Positions 369 through 64,000 of a stretch of DNA of 64,000 nt are shown here, piece by piece. Made by a program: the position numbers and the translations under genes. Under the pieces are notes generated by a model that ran no database searches, had not been told where the DNA came from, and saw only the letters and a program-made list of their open reading frames with translations. Where the stretch lies: positions 67,208,001 through 67,272,000 of the forward strand of contig NW_026262723.1 of NCBI RefSeq assembly GCF_021869535.1, in the 5' to 3' direction. Position 1 is the first letter of the stretch. Each line of letters begins with the position of its first letter. The DNA comes from Mytilus californianus (lineage: Eukaryota).

Positions 369-1443
369 ATTTATGATTCGATTAAGCAAAAGGAAATCCG
401 GGTAACAAACTAAAACCAAGGGAAACACATCAACTATAATAGGAAAGCAACGGAACAACAGAAACACTGAACTACAACAAAAGCAAACGCCAACATACAT
501 AGAAATAGATTGTCTGATAACAACTGCCATATTCCTGACTTGGTACAGGACATTTTTAGAAAAATGGTGGGTTGAACCTGGTTTTATGGCTAGCCAACCT
601 CCCGCTTATATGGCAATTAAATGTGACTTAATAGGTAAACTGACTACTAGTATAAAAAGCTACACCAGAATAAAATGTTAACGGCAGTCACAAAAAATTT
701 CGTGGTTTCATATATAGCTGGTTGTGATGGTAGCAATATTCTGTCAAACAATTATATTTAAATGTTTGTTTGATTTTCTTCAATTCTATTGTTGCGTGGT
801 TTTAAAACATTATTTGAACATGTAATACATTTGTATTGAACTGCAGCCTTCTAGGGCCACTGATATCGGTCATGATATTTAGCTAAATTGGTATTGGCCT
901 AGTTTTAGTCTAGTTTTGTTTTGTGTCATTTTCTATGACATGACTGTATCATGGCTTTGTATTGCCTTGGTCTTTCCTTGTGCTCTAAATTTTTGTGTCT
1001 GGTTTACTCTTCTGGTTCTTACTATACTATAAAGTACAAGGTGCAGGTTGTACAACAAATGCCAATACCAGAAGAAAAACTTCCGAAGGAAAGTAAATAT
1101 AAGAACACTTATATCATTCTAAAAAGGATGCAAAGCTACAAAAGGACCATGTAAATACTCTTAAAGTACAAAAAAAATGTATATGTGGGAACTAAATACT
1201 TTGTCAACAGCTTGACAATGATGAGTTGTAATGTGTGTGCACTTTTCGGATCTGTCAAACACATACTTTCTATTAGCCGATATTTTGAATTACAAGAGTT
1301 GGGGTATTCTTAGCACGACATCGCGTGCATTCCTGTTTACTTTTGGAAGTATATAAAAACTGCTTTTTTTTTAATGATTTAAAGTTTGAAAAAAAAACTT
1401 TCAACCTTGCCCCTAACATCCCCCCTCCCCTCCCCCCCCCCCC

Positions 1444-1867
1444 CCCCAAAGGTGACTGGGGAATAGAAATATGGTCTCCATTGGTCTTCCTCCGACCGGC
1501 AGTAAAACCCTGGCTAGAGTGGGGCGTCCGTTTGGCTGTGCGGGATGTACAAGTACACAGCAACGTCCGGTCACAATGGGAACGTTAAATCCGATGTTTC
1601 GTGTAGGGTGCCACGCTTTTTGAACGTTAAGAACCTTTGCAACAACTCTTTCATGGGTCCGTAGGTGGCCTGTTGCAAGGCTAAATTTCTGTCCTTATCC
1701 AATATACCCTTATTTTCCAGTGGCAGTAGAATTTTACTAACCTTATCCCGGACGGCGTTAATTACGAAACCTACAAAATTAAATGGTATTTATTATTACT
1801 TTGTTTTCGTCCTGAACATGCATGGAATATTTGCCACTGGACGTTAAGCAATCAATCAATCATCAAT
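1444..1867 (+). mobile_element. Structured SINE-like element (Deu/Nin-like core, (AATC)n tail), diverged copy
   Basis: Starts CCCCAAAGGTGACTGGGG, ends GGACGTTAAGCAATCAATCAATC; colinear with the other copies in the window. Confidence 0.9.
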
Positions 1868-3890: not shown

Positions 3891-4280
3891 CTTTTATTAT
3901 TCAATTCCAAAACAACGAAAAGTGGTTGGGATATGTGTCAAAATTACGTGAAGTTGATAGGAGCAAACCACATTCGATACAAATAGCTACTATTTCTTCT
4001 TAGTTATGGTCTGTCAAGTTTTCAATGTCCTTTGAACATTATAAATGCTCAACTTGTAAAATAACTGACAAACCATCATGTAACATATATAAAGAAAAAA
4101 TGTGTTAAGAAATTAATGACAATTAACATTGATTCGAAATATAACTGACTTAAATAAAAATTATTATTTTACTTTATACAGGAATGGATGCGTTTTAGTT
4201 AGTTAGTACATAATGGCTAAAAAATATGCCCAAATTCATACTGTTAACCTATATTAGAGAAACAATCGGTGAAAAATATG

Positions 4281-4678
4281 ATTGATTGTTGGTTGCTTAA
4301 CGTCCAGTGGCAAATATTTCATGCATTTTCAGGACGAGAACAAATTAATTAATACAATAGGTAGGTTCTGTAAGAGGGGCGTCCGGGATTAAGGTCGGAG
4401 AAATTTAGACTGCCACGGGAAATGAGGGTTTATTGGATAGGGACAGAAATTTAGCCTTGCAACAGGTCACCTACAGACCCCTCAAAGAGTTGTTGCAAGG
4501 GTTCTTAACGTGCAAAGAGCGTGGCACTCTCTTTACACGAGCCATTCTGACCGGACGTGGCTGCAAACTTGTACATCCCGCACAGCCAAACGGACGCCCC
4601 ACTTTAGCAAGGGTTTTACTGCCGGTCGGAGGAAGACCAATGGTGACCATACTTCTATTCCCCAGCCACCCTTGGGGG
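4281..4678 (-). mobile_element. Structured SINE-like element with 7-bp TSD
   Basis: Reverse-complement copy with a ~20-bp internal deletion; AAATATG at 4274-4280 and 4682-4688. Confidence 0.9.
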
Positions 4679-13051: not shown

Positions 13052-16000
13052 CCCCCCAAGGGTGACTGGGGAATAGAAGTATGGTCACCATTGGTCTTCC
13101 TCCGACCGGCAGTAAAACCCGTGCTAAAGTGGGGCGTCCGTTTGGCTGTGCGGGATGTACAAATTTGCAGCCACGTCCGGTCAGAATGGGGACGTTAAAT
13201 CCGATGCCTCGTGTAAAGAGAGTGCCACTCTCTTTGCACGTTAAGAACCCTTGCAACAACTCTTTGAGGGGTCCGTAGGTGACCTGTTGCAAGGCTAGTT
13301 TCTGTCCCTATCCAATATACCCTCATTTCCCGTGGCAGTCTAAATTTCTCCGACCTTAATCCCTTAATTTATTACAGAACCTACCTATTGTATTTATTGT
13401 GAACTTGTTCTCGTCCTGAATATGCATGAAATATTTGCCACTGTACGTTAAGCAACCAACAAACAATCAATCAATCAATCAATTATTTTTAAACATTCAA
13501 AAACATATAAAACAGCTGTATAGTGAGCTGTTCAAACAGACAACAGAAGAAAAAAAGTTTAGACATGCAGATCAGACTAAATTTGCCCCCCCCCTTTTTT
13601 CCCCCCCAATAACATACAGAACCTTTAAATGCTCCTCCCCTTTTTCAGAACCAAATGGTCATTCCCTATTAAACATTGGTAACTCATTCACCATAATACA
13701 TTGCATGGCCAATTTGACACAATAGATTACCCTTAATAAAATGAACCCCCAAGTGTGACTGGGGAATAGAAGTATGGTCACCATTGGTCTTCCTCCGACC
13801 GGCAGTAAAACCCTTGCTAAAGTGGGGCGTCCGTTTGGCTGTGCGGGATGTACAAATTTGCAGCCACGTCCGGTCAGAATGGGGACGTTAAATCCGATGC
13901 CTCGTGTAAAGAGAGTGCCACTCTCTTTGCACGTTAAGAACCCTTGCAACAACTCTTTGAGGGGTCCGTAGGTGATCTGTTGCAAGGCTAGTTTCTGTCC
14001 CTATCCAATATACCCTCATTTCCCGTGGCAGTCTAAATTTCTCCGACCTTAATCCCTTAATCTATTACAGAAACTACCTATTGTATTTATTGTGAACTTG
14101 TTCTCGTCCTGAATATGCATGAAATATTTGCCACTGGACGTTAAGCAACCAACAATCAATCAATCAATCAATTATTTTTAAACATTCAAAACCATATAAA
14201 ACAGCTGTATAGTGAGCTGTTCAAACAGACAACAGAAGAAAAAAAGTTTAGACATGCAGATCAGACTAAATTTGCACCCCCCTTTTTTCCCCCCAATAAC
14301 ATACAGAACCTTTAAATGCTCCTCCCCTTTTTCAGAACCAAATGGTCATTCCCTATTAAACATTGGTAACTCATTCACCATAATACATTGCATGGCCAAT
14401 TTGACACAATAGATTACCCTTAATAAAATGAACCCCCAAGTGTGACTGGGGAATAGAAGTATGGTCACCATTGGTCTTCCTCCGACCGGCAGTAAAACCC
14501 TTGCTAAAGTGGGGCGTCCGTTTGGCTGTGCGGGATGTACAAATTTGCAGCCACGTCCGGTCAGAATGGGGACGTTAAATCCGATGCCTCGTGTAAAGAG
14601 AGTGCCACTCTCTTTGCACGTTAAGAACCCTTGCAACAACTCTTTGAGGGGTCCGTAGGTGACCTGTTGCAAGGCTAGTTTCTGTCCCTATCCAATATAC
14701 CCTCATTTCCCGTGGCAGTCTAAATTTCTCCGACCTTAATCCCTTAATCTATTACAGAACCTACCTATTGTATTTATTGTGAACTTGTTCTCGTCCTGAA
14801 TATGCATGAAATATTTGCCACTGGACGTTAAGCAACCAACAATCAATCAATCAATCAATTATTTTTAAACATTCAAAAACATATAAAACAGCTGTATAGT
14901 GAGCTGTTCAAACAGACAACAGAAGAAAAAAAGTTTAGACATGCAGATCAGACTAAATTTGCCCCCCCCCCTTTTTTCCCCCCAATAACATACAGAACCT
15001 TTAAATGCTCCTCCCCTTTTTCAGAACCAAATGGTCATTCCCTATTAAACATTGGTAACTCATTCACCATAATACATTGCATGGCCAATTTGACACAATA
15101 GATTACCCTTAATAAAATGAACCCCCAAGTGTGACTGGGGAATAGAAGTATGGTCACCATTGGTCTTCCTCCGACCGGCAGTAAAACCCTTGCTAAAGTG
15201 GGGCGTCCGTTTGGCTGTGCGGGATGTACAAATTTGCAGCCACGTCCGGTCAGAATGGGGACGTTAAATCCGATGCCTCGTGTAAAGAGAGTGCCATTCT
15301 CTTTGCACGTTAAGAACCCTTGCAACAACTCTTTGAGGGGTCCGTAGGTGACCTGTTGCAAGGCTAGTTTCTGTCCCTATCCAATATACCCTCATTTCCC
15401 GTGGCAGTCTAAATTTCTCCGACCTTAATCCCTTAATCTATTACAGAAACTACCTATTGTATTTATTGTGAACTTGTTCTCGTCCTGAATATGCATGAAA
15501 TATTTGCCACTGGACGTTAAGCAACCAACAATCAATCAATCAATCAATTATTTTTAAACATTCAAAAACATATAAAACAGCTGTATAGTGAGCTGTTCAA
15601 ACAGACAACAGAAGAAAAAAAGTTTAGACATGCAGATCAGACTAAATTTGCACCCCCCCTTTTTTTTCCCCCAATAACATACAGAACCTTTAAATGCTCC
15701 TCCCCTTTTTCAGAACCAAATGGTCATTCCCTATTAAACATTGGTAACTCATTCACCATAATACATTGCATGGCCAATTTGACACAATAGATTACCCTTA
15801 ATAAAATGAACCCCCAAGTGTGACTGGGGAATAGAAGTATGGTCACCATTGGTCTTCCTCCGACCGGCAGTAAAACCCTTGCTAAAGTGGGGCGTCCGTT
15901 TGGCTGTGCGGGATGTACAAATTTGCAGCCACGTCCGGTCAGAATGGGGACGTTAAATCCGATGCCTCGTGTAAAGAGAGTGCCATTCTCTTTGCACGTT

Positions 16001-17618
16001 AAGAACCCTTGCAACAACTCTTTGAGGGGTCCGTAGGTGACCTGTTGCAAGGCTAGTTTCTGTCCCTATCCAATATACCCTCATTTCCCGTGGCAGTCTA
16101 AATTTCTCCGACCTTAATCCCTTAATCTATTACAGAAACTACCTATTGTATTTATTGTGAACTTGTTCTCGTCCTGAATATGCATGAAATATTTGCCACT
16201 GGACGTTAAGCAACCAACAATCAATCAATCAATCAATTATTTTTAAACATTCAAAAACATATAAAACAGCTGTATAGTGAGCTGTTCAAACAGACAACAG
16301 AAGAAAAAAAGTTTAGACATGCAGATCAGACTAAATTTGCACCCCCCCTTTTTTTTCCCCCAATAACATACAGAACCTTTAAATGCTCCTCCCCTTTTTC
16401 AGAACCAAACGGTCATTCCCTATTAAACATTGGTAACTCATTCACCATAATACATTGCATGGCCAATTTGACACAATAGATTACCCTTAATAAAATGAAC
16501 CCCCAAGTGTGACTGGGGAATAGAAGTATGGTCACCATTGGTCTTCCTCCGACCGGCAGTAAAACCCTTGCTTAAGTGGGGCGTCCGTTTGGCTGTGCGG
16601 GATGTACAAATTTGCAGCCACGTCCGGTCAGAATGGGGACGTTAAATCCGATGCCTCGTGTAAAGAGAGTGCCACTCTCTTTGCACGTTAAGAACCCTTG
16701 CAACAACTCTTTGAGGGGTCCGTAGGTGACCTGTTGCAAGGCTAGTTTCTGTCCCTATCCAATATACCCTCATTTCCCGTGGCAGTCTAAATTTCTCCGA
16801 CCTTAATCCCTTAATCTATTACAGAACCTACCTATTGTATTTATTGTGAACTTGTTCTCGTCCTGAATATGCATGAAATATTTGCCACTGGACGTTAAGC
16901 AACCAACAATCAATCAATCAATCAATTATTTTTAAACATTCAAAAACATATAAAACAGCTGTATAGTGAGCTGTTCAAACAGACAACAGAAGAAAAAAAG
17001 TTTAGACATGCAGATCAGACTAAATTTGCCCCCCCCCTTTTTTTCCCCCCAATAACATACAGAACCTTTAAATGCTCCTCCCCTTTTTCAGAACCAAATG
17101 GTCATTCCCTATTAAACATTGGTAACTCATTCACCATAATACATTGCATGGCCAATTTGACACAATAGATTACCCTTAATAAAATGAACCCCCAAGTGTG
17201 ACTGGGGAATAGAAGTATGGTCACCATTGGTCTTCCTCCGACCGGCTGTAAAACCCTTGCTAAAGTGGGGCGTCCGTTTGGCTGTGCGGGATGTACAAAT
17301 TTGCAGCCACGTCCGGTCAGAATGGGGACGTTAAATCCGATGCCTCGTGTAAAGAGAGTGCCATGCTCTTTGCACGTTAAGAAGCCTTGCAGCAACTCTT
17401 TGAGGGGTCCGTAGGTGACCTGTTGCAAAGCTAAATTTCTGTCCCTATCCAATATACCCTCATTTTCCGTGGCAGTCTAATTTTCTCCGACCCTAATCCC
17501 GGACGCCCCTATTACAGAACCTACCTATTGTATTTATTGTTAATTTGTTCTCGTCCTGAATATGCATGAAATATTTGCCACTGGACGTTAAGCAATCAAC
17601 AATCAATCAATCAATCAA
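13052..17618 (+). repeat. Tandem array of 7 SINE copies with 6 near-identical ~260-bp spacers (period 687-694 bp)
   Basis: SINE starts at 13052, 13746, 14433, 15122, 15811, 16500 and 17189; units are near-identical with a few diagnostic SNPs. Confidence 0.97.
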
Positions 17619-24856: not shown

Positions 24857-27800
24857 ATGACAAATATCATTCAATGGAATTGGCGAGGTCTTAAAATAAA
24901 TCTTCTCGAGTTAACGCTTCTAGTTCAGTCGTTTTTACCTATTGCATTGTGTCTTCAAAAACTCATCTAAAAGAAAGTGACAATGTATCTTTAAAAGGAT
25001 ACAACATCTATAGCACATTTTCTAAGGAAGCCGAACGTGCTGCAGGCGGATCAACCATTTTTGTGAAGGACAACGTCATTCATAGCACAGTCCAACTCAC
25101 CACAGATCTGCAGGCAGTTGCAATTCGTTTATCTTTAGATAAAACAATTACATTATGTTCTATATGTATTCCACCTAATTCAACTATAGATAAAGCTAAA
25201 CTCAAAATCTCACTGATCAGTTACCTTCACCTTTTATACTTGTGGGGAAGCAAGTCTCATAATGCCAAAGGTAAGATCATTGAAGACTTTGTCTCTCAAG
25301 AAGGAGTATGCATTTTTAATGATGGATTTAATACTTATCTTCACCCTGGAAACGGGTCTTATTCTGCTATTGATATAGCTATTTGCGATCCGTCTCTTCT
25401 TTTGGATTATTCATGGCGTGTCCATGATGATCTATGTGGAAGTGATCACTTCCCAATAATTTTGAACATCTTTTTACTTCTGCTCAACAGAGAGTACCAC
25501 GTTGGAAACTGGACAAGGCGGACTGGCCCTTGTTTGAGAATCTCTGTCAAGCGGAACTTCAGTCAAAGATGTTTGAGACTACAAGATCCAATTTTAACTT
25601 TTAACAAAGTTTTAACGTCAATTGCTGACAAAACAATTCCTAAGACCTCGGCAAATCCGAAACATCCCAGCAAACCATGGTTTGATGACGCTTGTGATCA
25701 AGCCATAGATGACCGTAACAAATCTGAAAGACGGTTCAATCAACATCCTACGACGGAAAATTTAAGTAATTTCCGTATGTTTCGCGCTAAGGCACGGCGG
25801 ACTTGCAGGCAAGCACGACAGACGTCTTGGAAAAAATTTGTCTCGGGGATAACATCTCGCACTCCGATGACAAAAGTATGGAACATGATACAAAAGATAA
25901 AAGGTAAAAATTCTAAAGCCACGGTAAAACATTTGAAAGATGGTAATAATTTATATACATCTGAAAAAGATATTGCCAACAAGCTTGGTGAAACTTTTGC
26001 GAAATCTTCTTCTTCTAACAACTACAGGGAAGATTTTAAAAAAGTTAAAAAACAAAAAAGAAGAAAGAAAGTTGAACTTTAAATCGAAAAATGGTGAAAA
26101 TTATAATAAACTCTTTTCTCTGGAAGAACTTAAAACATCTCTGTCAAAAGCCCATTACACAGCTTGTGGGCCTGATAATATTCACTACCAACTTTTAAAA
26201 CACTTGCCAGATTCCTTGCTGGAAGCTCTTTTGCAGCTCATGAATAACATCTGGGAATCTGGTGATTTACCATCAATTTAGAAGCTTGCAACTGTCGTGC
26301 TTATTCCAAAACCAAGTAAAGATCACACGGATCCTATTAACTATCGACCAATTGCTCTTACCAGTTGTGTCTGTAAAACACTAGAACGGATGGTCTCAAT
26401 GATCGCCTTGTTTGGTTCCTGGAATCAAAATGGCACTACATTGAAGTATGGTATTTTAAAAGATCTTTTTGATATGGGGTTGAAAGGCAATATGCCAAAT
26501 TTTATTTCGAATTTTCTGTCTAACAGACAATTTAATGTTAGAGTCAATTCAACCATGTCTGATCTGTATGATCAAGAGATGGGTGTCCCTCAGGGGAGTA
26601 TTTTATCTGTTACATTATTTAGTCTTAAAATTAACAGCCTTGTTGAAGTTTTGAAAAGTAATATTGAAGGTTCATTGTACGTTGATGATTTTTTAATATG
26701 TTACAGAAGCAAAAATATGAATAACATAGAACGACAATTACAATTATGTCTTGGAAGAATTGAAAAATGGGCCTCGGAAAATGGTTTTAAATTTTCTACT
26801 TCAAAAACGGTTGGGATGCATTTTTGTAACAAAAGGAAATTGCATCTTGATCCAGAACTCACCTTATGCGGAAACCCAATTAAAAATGGTTGATGAAATC
26901 AAATTTCTTAAGTTAGTTTTCGATAAAAAGTTAACCTTTCTACCCATATCAAAATGTTAAAATCGAGATGTTTAAAAGCATTAGATATTTTAAAAGTTGT
27001 CGGCAGCACTGACTGTTAATCCCATTTATGAAGATATATTTTCAAATCATGAAAATAAAATTCCTCCATTAGGAATTCGTTTAAAACCACATTTAACCAC
27101 TTTTGATTTAAAATCTGTTACACAAGTTGAAACTTGCAAATGTCCTCCATGGGAACTTCCCAAACCGAAAATGATTTTTGATCTCCGTAAATACAAAAAA
27201 ACGGAAACACACCCTCTTTTAATTCAATAACATTTTGCTGAAAATAAGGCAAATTATTCAGATTTTCCAACTTTTTATACAGATGGATCGAAAGATGGTA
27301 ACCGAGTTGCATCTGCTGCTGTCTTTGGAGACAGACTTGCGACTCTCCGTTTGTCATCTGCCGCATCCATATTTACTGCTGAAGCAAAGGCAATAAGTTT
27401 GGCTTTGAAATTTATTGCTACTTCAGACAAATCCAAATTTATTATATGTTCTGATTCACTTTTATGCTTACAAGCAATACAACATACTAAAATTAAAAAC
27501 CCGATAATTCTCAAGATTTCATATGTAAAAAGGAATTTAAAAATTCTTCATAAAGAAATAAGTTTTCTATGGGTTCCGAGTCGATGTTGGAATCCATGGA
27601 AACACGGTTGTGGACCAGGAAGCAAAAAATGCCCTGGATGATCCTTTATCTAACTGTGATATACCATATAATGATTTTAGATCTAATATTAGATAATATG
27701 TTTTTAATATTTTGGAAAATGAATGGAGTAAAAAAGATGATAATACATGAAATTAAACCTAAATTAGGTAAACCTTTTAATAATTTAATGTGCAGAAAAG

Positions 27801-39115: not shown

Positions 39116-41780
39116 TATGGCTTCTAAATTTTAAGAACCCAGAGGGTCAAATTGCAAGATGGTTTGAAATTCTTGCTGCTTATGATTTTAAAATTGAGCA
39201 CCGGGCTGGTCGCTCACATGCAAATGCTGATGCCATGTCAAGGATGCATTGTCATGATGAAAATTGTAGTCATTGTAACAGAGCTGAAGATAAATTCCAG
39301 AAGCTGGAAGTTCAGATGAAGTTGTACCCAATACTGTAGAGGTGCACCGTGTTCTTAATAAAAAGGGGGTGAAATATATCTCCTCGCCTGATCCAAATAC
39401 TAATAATATGATGACTTCAGAAAATATTGCTGTATATGTAACTACCAGATCGGGGAAAGCATTAGATAAATCCCACTCCTGGAATAGCAATAAAGCTGTG
39501 GAGTTGGGAAATTACCCATGGTGATAAATGTTATGATTTTACAGGAGAAAAAATTTGCTGAATGTCAAAATAATGACACTGTTTTACATTTATTAATTAA
39601 TTAGAAAGAAAATGGGGAGAGACCTGTTTGGGAGAAACTTTATCTGTGTAGTTCCGCAGTAAAATATTATTGGTCTTGGTGGGAGTCTCCTTATATAAAA
39701 CAAAAGGTTTTATATCAGAAATGGGAAAATGTAGATGGTAAAGGAGAAAAATGGTTAAAAGTTATTCGTAAAAAGCTTAAATAGTTATTTTTTATTCCAA
39801 TTACACAATAGTGTTACTGGAGGGCATTTAGGTGTCAAGAAAACTCTTTCTTAAGTTAGGGAAAGATATTCTTGGTTCAAACACAGGGATGATGTGGCTA
39901 ATTGGTGCCGGCAGTGTGATATTTGTGCCTCTAAAGAAGGTCCAAATAAAAAAGCCACATGCTCCACTCCAACAGTATAACGTTGGGGCTCCTTTAGAGC
40001 GTATAGCAGTTGATATTTTAGGCCCTTTACCCAGAACATATATATAAGGGAAATCGATATTTAATGGTTGTTGGGAGATTATTTCTCAAAATGGGCTGAC
40101 GCAATACCCATAAGGAATCAGGAAGCCACAATGAAATGTACAAGCTGTTAGGTTTACATAAAACCCGAACTACGGGTCTGAGACCTCAAAGTGATGGCAT
40201 GGTAGAAAGATTAAATAGTACCATTGAAAACATGTTAGCTAGTTTTGTTTCTGAAAATCAGAAAAATTGGGATGAGTACATATTTTTGCTCATGATGGCA
40301 TATAGAGCTTCTGCCCATGAAACCACCAAGGTTTCCCCTTATGAAATGACGTTTGGCCGCAGTATAAATTTGCCCATTGATCTTACAATTGGACACCCTG
40401 ATTCAAATTTGATGAAACCAGAATATAGTTCTGAATATGTTGATGAGTTGTCTACAAAATTATACAAAATTCATAAATTTGCACGAAAACATATTGCTGT
40501 TGGTAGCAATAATATGATTGATTGATTGATTGATTGTTGGTTGCTTTACGCCGCATTAGCACAACAAGGCTATATCGCGGTGAGAGCTAATTCGAATATT
40601 TTTTAAAATTTAAAGCATATTCTTAAAATCAGACAAATGGCCTTTCAATAAACTAAAATTCTAGATTAAAGCAAATTGATTATTTACAAATAAAAATGAA
40701 CATTAAGATAACGTGATAAAATTTAAAATCGTTTTAAATATAATAACATTTTTATATTTTAGAATATATTCCAACTTCTTTTAAGAATGAAACAATATTT
40801 GTAAATGGAACATTATTAAATAAATCATACATATTATTGACATTGAAATGCTTCTTACGAGTATCAGCAAAGTCAATACAATTGATTAAAACATGTTTAA
40901 TACTATACTTGCAGTTACAAGGTATACATTGTGGTTCTACTTCATTTTTTAAAAGATATTCGTGTGTTATTCTAGTATGACCAATACGACATCTAGAAAT
41001 AACACACTGATCTTTTCTGCACATAAAATTATTGAAAGGTTTACCTAAATTAGGTTTAACTTCATGTAATTTATTATCATCTTTTTTACTCCATTCATTT
41101 TTCAATATATTAAAAACATATTCTCTAATATTAGATTTAAAATCGGTATATGGTATATCACAGTTAGATAAAGAGTCACCCAGGGCATTCTTTGCCTCAA
41201 GGTCTACAGCTGTGTTTCCAAGGATTCCAACATGACTCGGCACCCATAGAAATAATATTTCTTTACGAAGAATTTTTAAATTCCTCATTACATATAAAAT
41301 TTTGAGAATTGTTGGGTTATTAATTTTAGTATTTTGTATAGCTTGTAAGCATGAAAGTGAATCAGAACATATAATAAATTTGGATTTATCTGAAGAAGCA
41401 ATAAATTTCAAAGCCAAAATTATTGCGTCTGCTTCAGCAGTAAAGATCGATGCATCAAATGGCAAACGGAGAGTTGCAGCTCTGTCCCTGAAGACAGCAG
41501 CAGATGCAACTCTGTCACGCAATAATATGAAACGGTTGTATGACAGAAGTACAAATTTGCATGAATATTAAGCTGGTGATGATGTATGGTTTTACAACCC
41601 TGTTCGCAGTAAAGGGTTAAATCCTAAATTATAAAGGCCTTGACTAGGACCTTTCTCAGTGTTAGAAAGAATAAAAGCTGTTATTTACAGAATAAAATAA
41701 TGTCCAAGGACAAAGCCTAAGATAGTCCACCATGACCGATTAAAATTACATGTTGGTGAAACATTACCTTTCAATGGATG
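39116..41780 (+). pseudogene. pol: Gypsy LTR-retrotransposon pol relic (RNase H end, H2C2 zinc finger, rve integrase, GPY/F), 5'-truncated
   Basis: LIWLLNFKNPEGQIARW, HANADAMSR, GGHLGVKKT, WCRQCDIC, PLERIAVDILGPLP, PQSDGMVERLN, LGPFSVLE. Confidence 0.92.
40517..41518 (-). mobile_element. 5'-truncated Nimb/I LINE (open RNase H frame, 3' UTR, (CAAT)n tail) inserted in the Gypsy integrase
   Basis: Perfect 11-bp TSD GCAATAATATG (40506-40516, 41519-41529); open frame 40752-41522; same family as 27270-28294. Confidence 0.95.
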
Positions 41781-50480: not shown

Positions 50481-51027
50481 AAAAAATATATTCAATAGGC
50501 CCTATACGAATGTTTTATGACTTTTTAAAAAATCTTTATAAAAAAAAGTTGAAATTCTTTGAATTTTTTACCAGATTTTAATTTAAACTAAGACAAAAAT
50601 ATTAATGTTATTTCTTAATAACCATGTTAATTAATATATTAATTTCATAATTTCATAAAATGGGGCATGTTTGTGATGTTCCTCATAACCACAATGGAAG
50701 ACAATTGTATATGGTGCCACTCTATAGTTAGACCCCGACAAGAACATATAGTAAATTGAATATTTGATGTTTTGTTGAATTTTTATACAACAAATATGTT
50801 GTTGAAATTGTGGTAAATAAAGCACCAAAAAAGACACTTATTCTTTGTTATTCTGCCTACCAGTCACAATGTCATTAGACACATCAATATAAATTTCATA
50901 TATCAATTGCTTACCTTCTTTAAAGAGAGAAGCCATTCTACGGCTACAGATGATTTATGATAATGCAGAAGATTGTAATGACCTTTCGTATCAATTGTTT
51001 GTACATCTTTCCGTACCAATGAGATGA

Positions 51028-51450
51028 TTGATTGATTGATTGTTGGTTGCTTAACGTCCAGTGGCAAATATGTCATGCATATTCAGGACGAGAAGAAGTT
51101 CACAATAAATACAATAGGTAGGTTCTGTATTAGATTAAGGGATTAATGTCGGAAAAATTTAGACTGCCACGGGAAATGAGGGTATATTGGATAGGGACAG
51201 AAATTTAGCCTTGCAACAGGTCACCTGTTGACCCCTCAAAGAGTTGTTGCGAGGGCTCTTAACGTGCAAAGAGCGTGGCACTCTCTTTACACGAGGCATC
51301 GGATTTAACGTCCCCATTCTGACCGGACGTGGCTGCAAATTTGTACATCCAGCACAGCCAAACGGACGCCCCGCTTTAGCGAGGGTTTTACCGCCGGTTG
51401 GAGGAAGACCAATGGTGACCATATTTCTATTCCCCAGTCTCCCTTGGGGG
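51028..51450 (-). mobile_element. Full-length structured SINE-like copy with 12-bp TSD
   Basis: TSD CCAATGAGATGA at 51016-51027 and 51451-51462 defines the exact 5' end as CCCCCAAGGG. Confidence 0.95.
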
Positions 51451-52457
51451 CCAATGAGATGAGCGTGGTCGTATTGTTCAGCGAAGATCTGAATATTGCT
51501 TACAAATAAATTTCATACTTTCTAAATGTTGGTCATAAACAATTTTAAACCTTTTAAAACAATATAAATAAATTCTCTCATTAAATAAAATTCCTTTTAG
51601 AAACAATTATGACTACCAAAATCTATTCAATGTTACTAATTTGTAATGATTAAAAATTAAATCAAAAATCTGTCAGTTAAAGTTAAATAAATGAACTGTT
51701 CAAGGGAGACAACAAAGCTAATTTGCCACAGTTTTCTCTATCCAATTAGCCAAGGAAAAATAAGCTAAAAATTGGTCATTGTCATACTTTTTACAGACTT
51801 AGGAGGTATTGAGTGAAATTTAAATATAGATTTATCATTAAACACCATTTGAATGCATTTAAATATGTTGGTACGAGTTTACAATGGTATGAATTTACCA
51901 TGGTACGAGTTTGTTTTGCTATAAATAGCTTATGTCAACAAGTTTGATACCCGGGATATTTTGAAAAAGATCCAAAGTCATCGCATCACAGTCAATACAC
52001 AGTTATTCATGTAAGTATGGTTATTTATGTGTTGAAAAGCAATAGGCATTGCGTATTATATGCAAGGAAACATTTCTTTTAATTATGTTTACTGATTTGT
52101 CTAAATTTTGATTACAAAATAGGAAAAAGCAAGCGTCCGCATTTACACTACAGAAAATAATATGATATGCGGACACACGATATTTTGAACACATTACACG
52201 TGTAGTGGTGCAATGTCAATACCAAGATGTGGAAAATAAGCAAAATTCTCTTAGAATCTACTAGTATTAATGCGAATCCTATACATTTATATCAATAAAG
52301 TGTTGATTTGGGTTTATTTGTTTTCCTTTCATTTTTGCATATTACGAATATAATGCGTTTACCAGTCTGATTTTCACTCCAGTTGCACCCATCTTCACTA
52401 GGTCAAAAACTGAAAAACGTCTTTCTCAAAGCCGATCTATTTCTCTCTCTTTACAGA

Positions 52458-52796: not shown

Positions 52797-53482
52797 TTTA
52801 ATCAAACGTTTTAAAATATGATAGAAATAAAATAACCATTACATCGGTTTAAAAGATCTCTTTAGACTTTCTGCGAGCGTCCAACAGTAATGACCTTGTG
52901 CATCCAGTCGTCTGTCTGTCTGTCCGTCTGTCTAATGAAAACAAAATCCTACAAATCGGAAAACAAACATAACTAGAAAACTGACAACGTCATGAAAGGC
53001 ACCACCGGTCATTTTCAAAAAACGAAAAATCGGAAATGCTCCACATGAAAATCGGAATGGAGCTTCCTCCATTGGTATTAAATGTTATGTGTATCCATCT
53101 AGGCACATTTAAGATAAATTGGTGAATGAATCTAAGATAGACAGACTGACGGATAAGGTGATTTTTGTCTCTTGTCTTGAAATTAAATCTATTACCGACT
53201 ATCAGTACGACTGACGAAAAGAAATCTATCGTACTTGCTGCCATTTTAATAATGTAAATTGCTTTCTATATCTGTATATACCTATCTTCTATATAAAAAT
53301 AAGGAGATGAGGTATGATTGTCAATGAGACAACTATCCGCAAAAGTTAAAATAAAGTGGATGTCAACAATTATAGGCAACCGTACAGTCTTCAACAATGA
53401 GAAAACCCATACTGTATAGTAAATAGTCGGTTCCTAAAACATTGAGCAAAATATTAAGTAAGTCTTCTGATATTTTTTTCAG

Positions 53483-53921
53483 AATTTTAAGAGCAAAAAA
53501 GAAATCACATATATTGAAATACGACCTGAAATCGCTGAAGAATGCTGTCGAGAGCGTTAAGTCTGGTCAAATGTCCGTGAGAAAGGCAGCGGAGCATTAC
53601 AACGTGCCTAAGTCAACCGTTGGGGATAGAGTGACCGGAAAAAGAAATATAGAAGTTGGCAGGGGCCGCAAACCAGCCCTGACCCTAGAATTAGACAATT
53701 CAATAGTCAAATCTGTAAAACGGGCATCACAGTTAGGAGTTGGCATATCACGCAGGCAACTTCTTGTGAGAACTGGGACATTAGTTAAAAGGCTAAAGAT
53801 CAAAACGCCTTTCAAAAACTCTATACCAGGAAAAGATTGGTGGCAGAATTTGAAAGAACGCCACAATGACCTAGTTATTAAACAGCCTGAAAAAACAGGC
53901 TCCCTTAAATTTCAAATATAA
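53483..53921 (+). pseudogene. pogo/Tigger-like transposase N-terminus (HTH psq + CENP-B-type HTH)
   Basis: YDLKSLKNAVESVKSGQMSVRKAAEHYNVPKSTVGDRVTG and PFKNSIPGKDWWQNLKERH; TTTTCAG acceptor. Confidence 0.88.
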
Positions 53922-58833: not shown

Positions 58834-59256
58834 CCCCAAGGGTGACTGGGGAATAGAAATATGGTCACCTTTTGTCTTCCTTCGACCGGCAGCAAAACCA
58901 TCGCCAAAGTGCGGGGTCCGTTTAGAATGTCGGGATGTACTAGTACGCAGTCACATCCGTCGAATGGGGACGTTAACTGATGCCTCGTGTACAGAGAGTG
59001 CAACGCTCTCTGCACACCAAGACCCTTTGCAACAGCTCATTGAGGGTTCCGTATGTGACCTGTTGTAAGGCCAAATTTCTGTCCCATCAAATATACACTC
59101 ATTTTGGCAGTGCCAGTTTAAATTTCCCGACCTTCATCCCAGACGGCCTCTATCACAGGACCTACCTATTGTATTTATTGTTAATTTGTTCGCGTCCTGA
59201 ATATACATGAACTATTAGCCACTGGACGTTAAGCAACCAACACTCAATCAATCAAT
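58834..59256 (+). mobile_element. Structured SINE-like element, diverged full-length copy
   Basis: CCCCAAGGGTGACTGGGG start; GGACGTTAAGCAACCAACACTCAATCAATC end. Confidence 0.9.
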
Positions 59257-59535
59257 TATCAAATATTCAAATTAAAACAGCATATGTCAAAATTAAAAAT
59301 ATCTAACATTACAGACTCGCATATGATGCGCACACAGTATTGACAAGGAAGTTTTTTTTCCCTAATGTCGGATAACAAAATCAAAGTAAAATATAATCGA
59401 TCTTCAAAAGTGCGCCATGTAGAAAACACGGGTGCCATCAGGAAGGATTGCCCTTTCCACTTTTTTTCACTCTACTGTACCCATAAAGAATAATAACTAA
59501 CCCTAAAAAAATGACACTTCTTTTCCCTTATAAGA

Positions 59536-59827
59536 TTGATTGATTGATTGTTGGTTGCTTAACGTCCAGTGGCAAATAGTTCATGCATATTCAGGACGAG
59601 AACAAATTAACAATAAATACAATAGGTAGGTTCTGTAATAGGGGCTTCCGGGATTAAGGTCGCAGAAATTTAGACTGCCACGGGAAATGAGGGTATATTG
59701 AATAGGAACAGAAATTTAGCCTTGCAACAGGTCACCTACGGAGCCCTCAAAGAGTTGTTGCAAGGGTTCTTAACGTGCAAAGAGCGTGGCACTCTCTTTA
59801 CACGAGGCATCGGATTTAACGTCCCCA
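59536..59827 (-). mobile_element. 5'-truncated SINE copy with 14-bp TSD
   Basis: TSD TTTCCCTTATAAGA at 59522-59535 and 59828-59841. Confidence 0.93.
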
Positions 59828-60284
59828 TTTCCCTTATAAGAATAGTTCGTCAGAATTGTGGTATAGTGACTTTTCTTTGGAGTGCTTGGTAGTGGTGATA
59901 TGGGTTTCGGCGTTTGCAGATCTTTTAATAGGAGAGGAAACATTTGAAAATATACAATACGCCCCTTCAATGATATTGCAGGCATGTTGAATAGGGGGCA
60001 GATTTCACAATGGTTTTGAAAAATACGGGAAAACGTCATTGAAACTGAACAGTTGCTTAGAAACATGCACAGGATTTCCCCTTACTTTCTTACCATTCCC
60101 AGCTCTATCTAAAAAATCTGCCCCTATTCATCATGGCTGCAATAACCGTGACGTGGCCTATTGTAAGTTCCTAGAGAAAGTAATAGTTATAGCTAAATAC
60201 TATAGATTTCTGAACTTTCGAAAAATTGTGCATATTCATCTATATACAATAAAATGTGCGGCCTACAGTTTTATAACAATACAA

Positions 60285-62209: not shown

Positions 62210-62840
62210 CCCCAAGGGTGACTGAAGAACATACGTATGGTAACTTTGGTTTACCGGCAGTTAAACCCTTGCAAAAAGGGGCGACTGTTTGGCTATCCGG
62301 GAATACAGGGGGGGGGGGGGGGGGGGGGGGGGGAATATATGATTAGGTCAATAAAGATCCCATTACTTGTTACATAAAAGCACAGTATTTTTGTCACAGC
62401 CAAGTATCGCCGTAAGTTAACATTACATAAGGAATCTTGAGCTTCAGATCTGAGCAAAGGTGAAAATTTTCCTCATTTGAAACTTAGGTATTCCACTTTT
62501 CCAACACACCACAAACCCAACCATTATGGGAAAAGGTTAGAGTTTACCTACGCAATATATGAAAAAGGTATACATTTTTAAAATCTAAATTGTATGAAAA
62601 GGGTGGGGTAACAGAACCCCAACAGCACCCCAATAAAAAAAGTATTGATATGCGCCTTCCCTCCCTCCCCCAGGGATGTACAAGTACACAGCCACGTCCG
62701 GTTAGAATGGAGATATTTAGAGGGAATTCCATGGGCTCCGCAAGACCCCATGCAACAACGTTTTGCAGGGTTCGTAGGTGGCCTGTTGCAAGGTAAATTG
62801 TCAGTCTCTATCCAATATACCCTCTTTTTTCAGTGACAAT
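62210..62840 (+). mobile_element. Old SINE copy split into a 5' piece (62210-62305) and a core piece (62673-62840)
   Basis: CCCCAAGGGTGACTG start; GGGATGTACAAGTACACAGCCACGTCCGG...GGTGGCCTGTTGCAAGG. Confidence 0.7.
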
Positions 62841-63713
62841 CCAGATTTCGCGTAGAGACCTTCTTGACCTTTGCGACCAAAATGTAATAAAATGTGCAAA
62901 TGAGCTTATTTTGTACTGTCATGACTGTCTAAACTGAAGACTCTACTTGATAAAGAATATCTCCCTCAGAATCGGATTTCTTGTGAATGTTCACGTAAAG
63001 GCCTGATGCTTCCAGTTTCAATATTATAACAAGCCTAACATAACACGATTTGAAGTCATGAATTCCCGGTCTTTCGTAAGGCTGATTTGCCTGTTCTATG
63101 GTGGACTAGTACGTGCCTAGATATGGCAGTCCTGATACCAATTAACGTAGACTTACACTATTCTGTTTCTTTTTCATTTGGAGACTTGCTTAAAAAAAAT
63201 TTAGTCTTTTGTCAAATATTGAGATATCTAGTATTTCAAATTCTACATCACAATACTTCGGCCAACCATTTTTTGTTTATGTTGAGTCAAAACTAGTTAT
63301 TTTAATCAACAACACAAATAACTTCAATTATTATTTTATCAAATTGTATCAACACATAAAACACTTATAACGTATCAAGTATTATACAACACTCAGTGTA
63401 TACACTGCACTGTTAAAGGTCGACCTGACTAGAATATTACATTTTCACCTTTTTTCAGATTAATTGTCTGTCATTTCATTAATCATGATAACACACACAA
63501 ATATTTAATTAAAAATTCACCACTTAAGAGTAATAATGAAAATACACTATTTCACTAATTGTTTTAAAACACATAATTTTACTAAATATTTAAAGTCCAC
63601 CCTACCATATGTGATAATATATAATTAAAATATATTATTTCACTACATCCATAAGTCCACCCTACCAATCCCCTTAATTAACATAGCTCATTTACTAACT
63701 AATCCCTTTATCT

Positions 63714-64000
63714 CGTCCGTTTGGCTGTGCGGGATGTATCAAGTATACGCAGCCACGTCCGGTCAGAATGGGGACGTTAAATCCGATGCCTTGTGTAGAG
63801 GCCACGCTCTCTGCACGTTAAGACACCTTGCAACAACTCTTTGAGGGGTCCGTAGGTAGCCTGTTGCAAGGCAAAATTTCTGTCCCTATCTAATATACCC
63901 TCATTTTTTTGAAGTGGCAGTCGACATTTTCCCGACCTTATCTCGGACGGCCTAAATTACAAGACCTACCTTTTATATTTATTGTTAATTTGTTCTCGTC
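63714..64000 (+). mobile_element. 5'-truncated SINE copy running off the window end
   Basis: CGTCCGTTTGGCTGTGCGGG...TTTGTTCTCGTC. Confidence 0.9.

Follow-up and report, generated by a model that had tools for sequence, protein, structure and literature searches.

The window analyzed here, a stretch of 64,000 nt from Mytilus californianus (contig NW_026262723.1), contains a repeat of ~425 bp whose first 36 nt, at 58834-58869, read CCCCA-AG-GGTGAC-TGGGG-AATAGAAATATG-GTCACC. In the original prediction, these bases were described as an H-type pseudoknot, with CCCCA pairing with TGGGG (stem 1) and GGTGAC with GTCACC (stem 2), at the fixed 5' end of a "headless" SINE. The sequence is exactly as described, with AG between CCCCA and GGTGAC as a 2-nt loop 1 and no spacer between the stems. 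The locus raises the question of what defines the 5' end of such an element, and whether the terminal fold takes part in defining it.

A retroposon with a fixed 5' end

We compared ~40 full-length genomic copies with their flanks. Each is bounded by target site duplications (TSDs) of 9-12 bp that adjoin (N)CCCCCAAGGG...(ATCA)n, save for 0-2 additional nt at the 5' junction. C predominates among these additional bases; G, T and A also occur, G in only ~10% of copies. The true end had been placed from a single TSD at 51451. This duplication (TCTCATTGG, at 51450) is real, and the ~40 further copies agree with it, their TSDs likewise abutting (N)CCCCCAAGGG with 0-2 extra nt. Copies truncated at the 5' end carry TSDs yet no added C-run, which indicates that the C-run of full-length heads is templated and rules out non-templated C addition by the reverse transcriptase. 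A rolling-circle element (Helitron/Helentron) on the other strand is likewise ruled out, given TSDs, 5'-truncated copies and a LINE tail. The element spreads by LINE-type retrotransposition, and its 5' end is fixed. At SINE target sites, TCA or ATC directly precedes the TSD, matching the (ATCA)n tail, which suggests tail-to-target annealing during priming.

The claim that no tRNA head or B box follows this end was borne out by Rfam, ARAGORN and box matching. Searches of the window with Rfam at gathering thresholds and with ARAGORN returned nothing, and permissive Rfam scans (E ≤ 10) of one old and one young SINE copy revealed no tRNA, 5S, 7SL, snRNA or ribozyme. The best A and B box matches in the SINE were no better than those in shuffled sequence. 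A tRNA, 5S, 7SL, snRNA or known-ribozyme head is thus ruled out, there being no Rfam or ARAGORN match, and no family consensus extends 5' of the fixed end.

Within the window, the word CCCCAAGGGTGAC occurs 12 times at ≤2 mismatches against 0.4 expected, and BLAST of one SINE unit against the window yielded the copies listed in Table 1. The original prediction had counted seven copies as independent. This holds for those starting at the 5' end at 1443, 4678 (-), 51450 (-), 58834 and 62210, but the heads from 13053 to 17189 belong to one tandem array. In this array (13053-17617), the first copy has GGG at nt 8-10 where the other copies have GTG; because it differs from the rest at nt 9, the array is probably a young, satellite-like product of unequal exchange between two insertions lying side by side. 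Head-to-tail SINE dimers were also observed elsewhere (locus L016, and joints in RNA-seq).

Table 1. Coordinates of SINE copies, parts of the 5' fold and the partner LINE in the 64,000-nt window
Feature	Position	Strand	Remarks
Flagged SINE copy, full length, (CAAT)n tail	58834-59256	+	Old, ~82% identity to the young consensus
Stem 1, 5' strand CCCCA, at element terminus	58834-58838	+	Conserved in all lineages, invariant
Stem 2, 5' strand GGTGAC	58841-58846	+	Sequence and cross-lineage covariation
Stem 1, 3' strand TGGGG	58847-58851	+	Sequence and lineage comparison
Loop 3, 12 nt, A-rich, AATAGAAATATG	58852-58863	+	AGAA core common to LINE modules ((U)UAGAAUA)
Stem 2, 3' strand GTCACC	58864-58869	+	Sequence and lineage comparison
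Hairpin II, pyrimidine-rich loop	58873-58887	+	Consensus GGTC-TTCCTCC-GACC; first G mutated in the flagged old copy
Old full-length SINE copy	1443-1867	+	5' C-run expanded
Full-length SINE copy	4279-4678	-	A13>G, giving G-U in stem 2
Tandem array, 7 SINE copies/heads	13053-17617	+	Period 689; unit of SINE plus 264-bp spacer
Young full-length SINE copy	51025-51450	-	TSD TCTCATTGG
5'-truncated SINE copy	59534-59829	-	TSD TTATAAGGGA, without added C-run
Old decayed SINE copy	62210-62848	+	Split by insertion at 62305-62665
5'-truncated SINE copy	63714-64000	+	Runs off the window end
Partner LINE, 5'-truncated	40508-41522	-	ORF2 C-terminus with RNase H-like part; 3' UTR ends ...GCGGCGTAAAGCAACCAACAATCA(ATCA)n

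Across the genome (1.65 Gb, ~35% GC), at least 8,588 SINE heads match the first 35 nt at ≤3 mismatches, whereas the reversed control pattern gave 0. Young copies are 96-97% identical. In ~5 of 90 copies, the 5' C-run has grown to 8-13 or more Cs (window 1430-1443; loci L021, L029, L060 and L062), and C-runs of 5-10 are found in a metagenome LINE family. The body of the SINE contains a hairpin of ~14 bp at consensus nt 157-187 (GUGUAAAGAGAG...CUCUCUUUGCAC; e.g. window 13209-13239), the opposite strand of which gave a weak mir-7143-like Rfam match (E 0.59). The ~360-bp insertion that splits the old copy at 62210 has a run of 26 Gs at one end and a TSD-like GGGA(T)GTACA. Elsewhere, the window holds another LINE fragment, which encodes APE and RT domains, as well as a transposase-like ORF bearing an HTH_psq domain (24949-26893 and 53442-53921).

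In one raw RNA-seq run, the element was present in RNA with a strand ratio of ~3.5:1, which would be an excess of sense reads for a dUTP-type library. The run showed no accumulation of 5' ends, and 88% of the SINE-matching reads continued into unlike sequence. These reads are uninformative, speaking neither for nor against a discrete SINE transcript.

The element can be compared with LP-SINEs (Matetovici et al. 2016, Genome Biol Evol, PMC4758252). These SINEs of gastropods and bivalves are TSD-flanked and tandem-repeat-tailed, and over their first ~70 bp they are homologous to the beginning of Nimb-clade LINE 5' UTRs. Both the published elements and the present one are mollusc SINE-like elements with variable TSDs, a tandem-repeat tail, mobilization by a LINE and no Pol III head. 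The present element fits the LP-SINE class when matched to the published description, as distinct from LP-SINE or Nimb-17_LMi sequences. Such membership would explain the "headless" state as one of a kind already known. To that description, the present analysis adds a cross-lineage covarying stem, a possible pseudoknot, two further hairpins, similarity to ~100 nt and a named partner LINE. The folded nature of the shared 5' domain appears to be new, and SINE sequence strings gave no match in the literature. Canonical tRNA-, 5S- and 7SL-headed SINEs resemble this SINE in size, TSDs, LINE-derived tail, copy number and 5' truncations; in contrast to them, it has neither a Pol III head nor A and B boxes, and a T4 run occurs in one active subfamily (absent in subfamily A, one in subfamily B).

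The partner LINE and stem 2 across its relatives

A 5'-truncated copy of the partner LINE lies in the same window (Table 1), and its last ~40 nt and (ATCA)n tail are common to the SINE. The genome contains many intact copies with a 1225-aa ORF2 carrying APE, RT and RNase H-like domains, including two full-length copies of 6.19 kb with TSDs (L042:2796-8982 and L043). Among 20 full-length copies, 15 start with (C/T/G)CCCCCGGTGGATC or (C/T/G)CCCCCGGTGGATCGC right after unrelated flanks, so the LINE also begins with a C-run. Apart from the tail, SINE nt 1-385 showed no similarity to the partner LINE above that of shuffled sequences. The SINE body is not collinear with this LINE, which rules out an internally deleted LINE (SIDE). 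In the partner LINE as it now stands, the 5' end is rearranged and the A-rich loop is missing.

The first 147 nt of this LINE (L042:2796-2942) match an HDV-like ribozyme descriptor anchored at nt 1, as did 1 of 5,000 shuffles. The fit (P1 1-7/32-38, P2 9-17/139-147, P3 18-20/29-31, J4/2 CUAA) is the sole match in the first 1,200 nt of the LINE, and its core is non-canonical, with a weak P1.1 and C-G as the first pair. A related LINE on an ENA metagenome contig (58% ORF2 identity) carries a canonical HDV-like ribozyme upstream of ORF1 at L102:555-628, with P1 GGGAUGC/GCAUCCC, P3 GGG/CCC, L3 UCCACGU, GG for P1.1, J4/2 CUAA and P2 GAGAGCA/UGCUCUC; this ribozyme is absent from the Rfam results at gathering thresholds. 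The descriptor (P1-P2-P3/L3-P1'-(P4)-J4/2 with C-P2', a nested double pseudoknot that begins at the cleavage site) follows the published motif and recovers both L102:555-628 and the non-canonical fit in the partner LINE; it found no match in the SINE.

ORF2 of the partner LINE has hundreds of relatives with the same domains at 50-63% identity. Our LINE set comprised the contigs of these relatives, fetched with their flanks, and metagenome contigs from a pattern scan. Most of the 119 matches of that scan were chance, and the only real family came from two sample series. Right after unrelated flanks, the LINE 5' terminus consists of a C-run of 4-10, 1-3 nt, a segment of 6-8 nt, 0-1 nt and a G-run of 2-6, followed by an A-rich loop with a (U)UAGAAUA-like core and then the complement of the 6-8 nt segment. 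The SINE head shows the same ordered arrangement. On three contigs (L103, L231 and L232) the module was not found, probably because the 5' end is missing.

We compared stem 2 in nine lineages, namely the SINE (GGUGAC/GUCACC) and LINE relatives from other organisms (GUGGGUC/GGCCCAC, CGGGUC/GGCCCG, UGGCAGG/CCUGCCA, GGGAUC/GGUCCC, GGGGACC/GGUCUCC, AGCUGGGU/GCCCAGCU, UGGGUU/GACCCA and GCGGGUCC/GGGCCCGC). In a MAFFT alignment of 15 LINE modules, 96% of the stem 2 cells were paired, and both sides had changed in four of seven pairs. The covariation score of 0.333 compared with 0.163 ± 0.019 in shuffled controls, none of 500 shuffles reached it, and controls with slid registers collapsed. When the 3' strands were permuted among the nine lineages, none of 20,000 permutations reached the observed complementarity. 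Judged from this comparison, stem 2 is a real helix under selection for pairing, in an arrangement that permits an H-type pseudoknot. The C-run and G-run of stem 1 are present in all lineages and never vary, so that this stem offers no covariation as proof; we infer it, and hence the full H-type pseudoknot.

For the G-run of the module, the C-rich loop of the hairpin that follows (CCCCCU, CUCC or UUCCUCC) is another possible partner, in the 5' UTRs of five LINE contigs (L106, L107, L105, L109 and L229) and at SINE consensus nt 41-55. Such re-pairing with the loop of hairpin II might constitute a conformational switch.

Structure within the SINE family and relation of its head to the LINE module

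Within the SINE family, the proposed structure is paired in 95.7% of cells across 86 heads, and covariation among these heads equals that of shuffled controls. The C-run can pair with another G-run, at nt 79-82, just as well as it does in stem 1, and the only double change within the family (C4U with G17A) occurs 4 times genome-wide. As predicted, the copy at 4678, listed at about 4.66 kb, has A13>G and so a G-U pair in stem 2; as support for stem 2 from within the family, however, this G-U change is at chance level. The covariation asked for in the original prediction is accordingly found for stem 2 across lineages but not within the family, and stem 1 is invariant across the lineages.

In nt 1-60 of the subfamily consensuses, seven of the eight variable sites fall in loops or linkers, and the eighth turns the closing G-C of stem 2 into G-U. 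The position of variable sites outside the stems is suggestive of structure (our own hypergeometric estimate, p ~0.03-0.06). Nested folding energies of the SINE head were no more stable than those of shuffled sequences (z near 0), and rough nearest-neighbour arithmetic, done by hand rather than with a tool, put the pseudoknot at ~-10 kcal/mol, about equal to the best nested fold at -9.7. Motifs with the same stem and loop lengths number 19 in 128 kb (both strands) versus 6.3 in shuffles. Such geometry is not rare in itself, so the evidential weight lies in its position at nt 1-2 and its conservation.

The resemblance of the SINE head to the LINE module extends beyond the putative pseudoknot. 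Downstream, the succession of hairpins is the same in both: one with a pyrimidine-rich loop (SINE GGUC-UUCCUCC-GACC), next a GUCG-UAAGAGG-CGAC-type hairpin, and then AAAUGGGGC, after which comes a hairpin whose loop is GUUUGCCGUG (SINE GUUUGGCUGUG). The stems of hairpins II and III covary among the LINEs. A covariance model built from LINE modules alone found its best match in SINE loci on nt 1-40, with weak scores of 14 and 12.6 bits (E 0.3-0.7), and shifted the SINE stem 2 by one column. Because MAFFT and covariance-model alignments both misplace the register of this stem, we compared the SINE stem 2 by our own parse. Plain sequence similarity between the SINE head and LINE 5' regions is marginal (z 1.7-3.2), and the 5' module matches no Rfam family. 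On these sequence features, common descent of the SINE head and the LINE module is likely, though not proven, with convergence as the alternative. The label "headless" is thus misleading: the element has no Pol III head, but it does have a head that resembles the 5'-terminal module of Nimb/I-like LINEs.

Possible roles of the 5'-terminal domain

We consider it reasonably probable that an LP-type SINE begins at the flagged bases, with a LINE-derived, folded 5'-terminal domain acting in cis. The ~425-bp non-autonomous retroposon would be copied via target-primed reverse transcription by the very active 6.2-kb Nimb/I-like LINE. Its head, about the first 100 nt, would correspond module by module to the structured 5'-terminal domain of this LINE clade: in order, the terminal C-run, a stem 2 of 6-8 bp whose loop includes a (U)UAGAAUA-like A-rich stretch besides a G-run, then one hairpin with a pyrimidine-rich loop and another with the loop GUUUGCCGUG. 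Since covariation is seen in the stems, and the module persists in a SINE that codes for no protein, the domain may act in cis as folded RNA or first-strand cDNA, at a step common to LINE and SINE and other than translation. A candidate step would be the making, protecting or marking of the exact 5' end, or recognition by LINE protein to complete integration. The fixed 5' end would then simply coincide with that of the source RNA, copied through to the final base.

Comparable arrangements are known from other non-LTR elements. In the trypanosomatid pairs RIME/ingi and NARTc/L1Tc (Pr77 hallmark, L1TcRz), a short 5'-terminal module is common to a non-autonomous element and a LINE; as proposed here, the module defines the 5' end, and as here the LINE carries RNase H. 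However, Pr77 is an HDV-like ribozyme and a promoter, whereas the SINE head fits no HDV-like descriptor, and the trypanosomatid elements are deletion derivatives, whereas the body of this SINE is unrelated to its LINE. The 5' RNA of R2 is likewise a pseudoknotted, structured 5' RNA in a LINE, kept by its non-autonomous derivatives; R2 combines an HDV-like ribozyme with a conserved 5' pseudoknot, and it differs from the present case in LINE clade, fold and sequence. In R2, the pseudoknot at the 5' end serves as a binding site for the R2 protein.

An alternative that we regard as possible, if somewhat unlikely, is a DNA-level internal promoter, probably for Pol II, that would start transcription at nt 1 and leave the RNA fold a secondary role. 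A promoter function was proposed for the LP-SINE head from its position, without a test, and that report discusses no RNA structure (Matetovici et al., PMC4758252). Thousands of young copies imply a portable promoter, and the first ~112 nt are nearly invariant between young SINE subfamilies; the ~3.5:1 ratio of RNA reads would also agree with such a promoter in a dUTP-type library. However, that stem 2 and hairpins II and III have changed in a compensatory way speaks for selection on a single-stranded fold rather than a duplex motif. Transcripts beginning with C5-6 would match no standard initiator, and the extra junction bases, with C prevailing and G so infrequent, leave no clear cap footprint. 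The two roles are compatible and, by analogy with L1Tc, in which Pr77 is both promoter and ribozyme (PMC3383444), could coexist.

It is unlikely that the head, as a self-cleaving ribozyme or a processing signal, releases the element's 5' end from read-through transcripts of the host. LINE 5' ends are known to carry ribozymes, HDV-like in R2 and L1Tc and twister variants in Perere-3, and this explanation would accommodate both the canonical ribozyme of the related LINE (L102:555-628) and the descriptor fit at nt 1 of the partner LINE, as well as the RNA reads that run from the SINE into unlike sequence. Against it, the core of the partner-LINE fit is non-canonical, and the SINE and the compact LINE modules leave no room for P3 and L3, most of them being without a C in the J4/2-equivalent loop. 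In the SINE, the HDV-like descriptor finds nothing, and no Rfam ribozyme appears even at E ≤ 10.

The original prediction had favoured RNA processing or exonuclease stalling as what sets the 5' end. An xrRNA-like block, or a recessed, G-C-clamped end that would stop 5'-3' exonucleases at nt 1, seems to us very unlikely. In its favour, the helix begins at nt 1-2, the geometry would be feasible, with a loop 1 of 2 nt, no spacer and an A-rich loop 3 of 12 nt, and the module is terminal in all lineages, but the head has no ring-forming three-way junction and no likeness to a known xrRNA in Rfam. Stem 1 is moreover unproven, the pseudoknot is by our hand estimate about as stable as the best nested fold, and RNA ends do not pile up. 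That the complementary segments are a functionless chance feature of one SINE family is scarcely credible: covariation within the family is absent, fold z-scores are near 0 and such geometry arises once per ~7-20 kb, but at least eight other lineages begin with the same arrangement, their stem 2 sequences being different yet complementary.

A stronger proposal can be made, which we hold only tentatively and think rather doubtful: the C-run pseudoknot module may represent a new class of 5'-end-defining RNA element common to Nimb/I-like LINEs and LP-SINEs. It might be a novel motif that cleaves itself or is processed in trans, or else a terminal fold that LINE proteins have to bind to finish integration. 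If true, such a class would account for the fact that a parasite without coding capacity imitates its LINE at both ends.

LP-SINEs have been reported as the sole SINEs with a LINE-sequence head, and the role of this head and the polymerase that transcribes it have been in question since 2016. A helix that is kept by compensatory change in distant LINEs and retained by a non-coding SINE shifts the question from whether the head is a promoter to what a folded 5' terminus does in retrotransposition. It also places a highly active LINE/SINE pair of a mollusc in a broader context, that of non-LTR elements with ribozymes and structured 5' ends.
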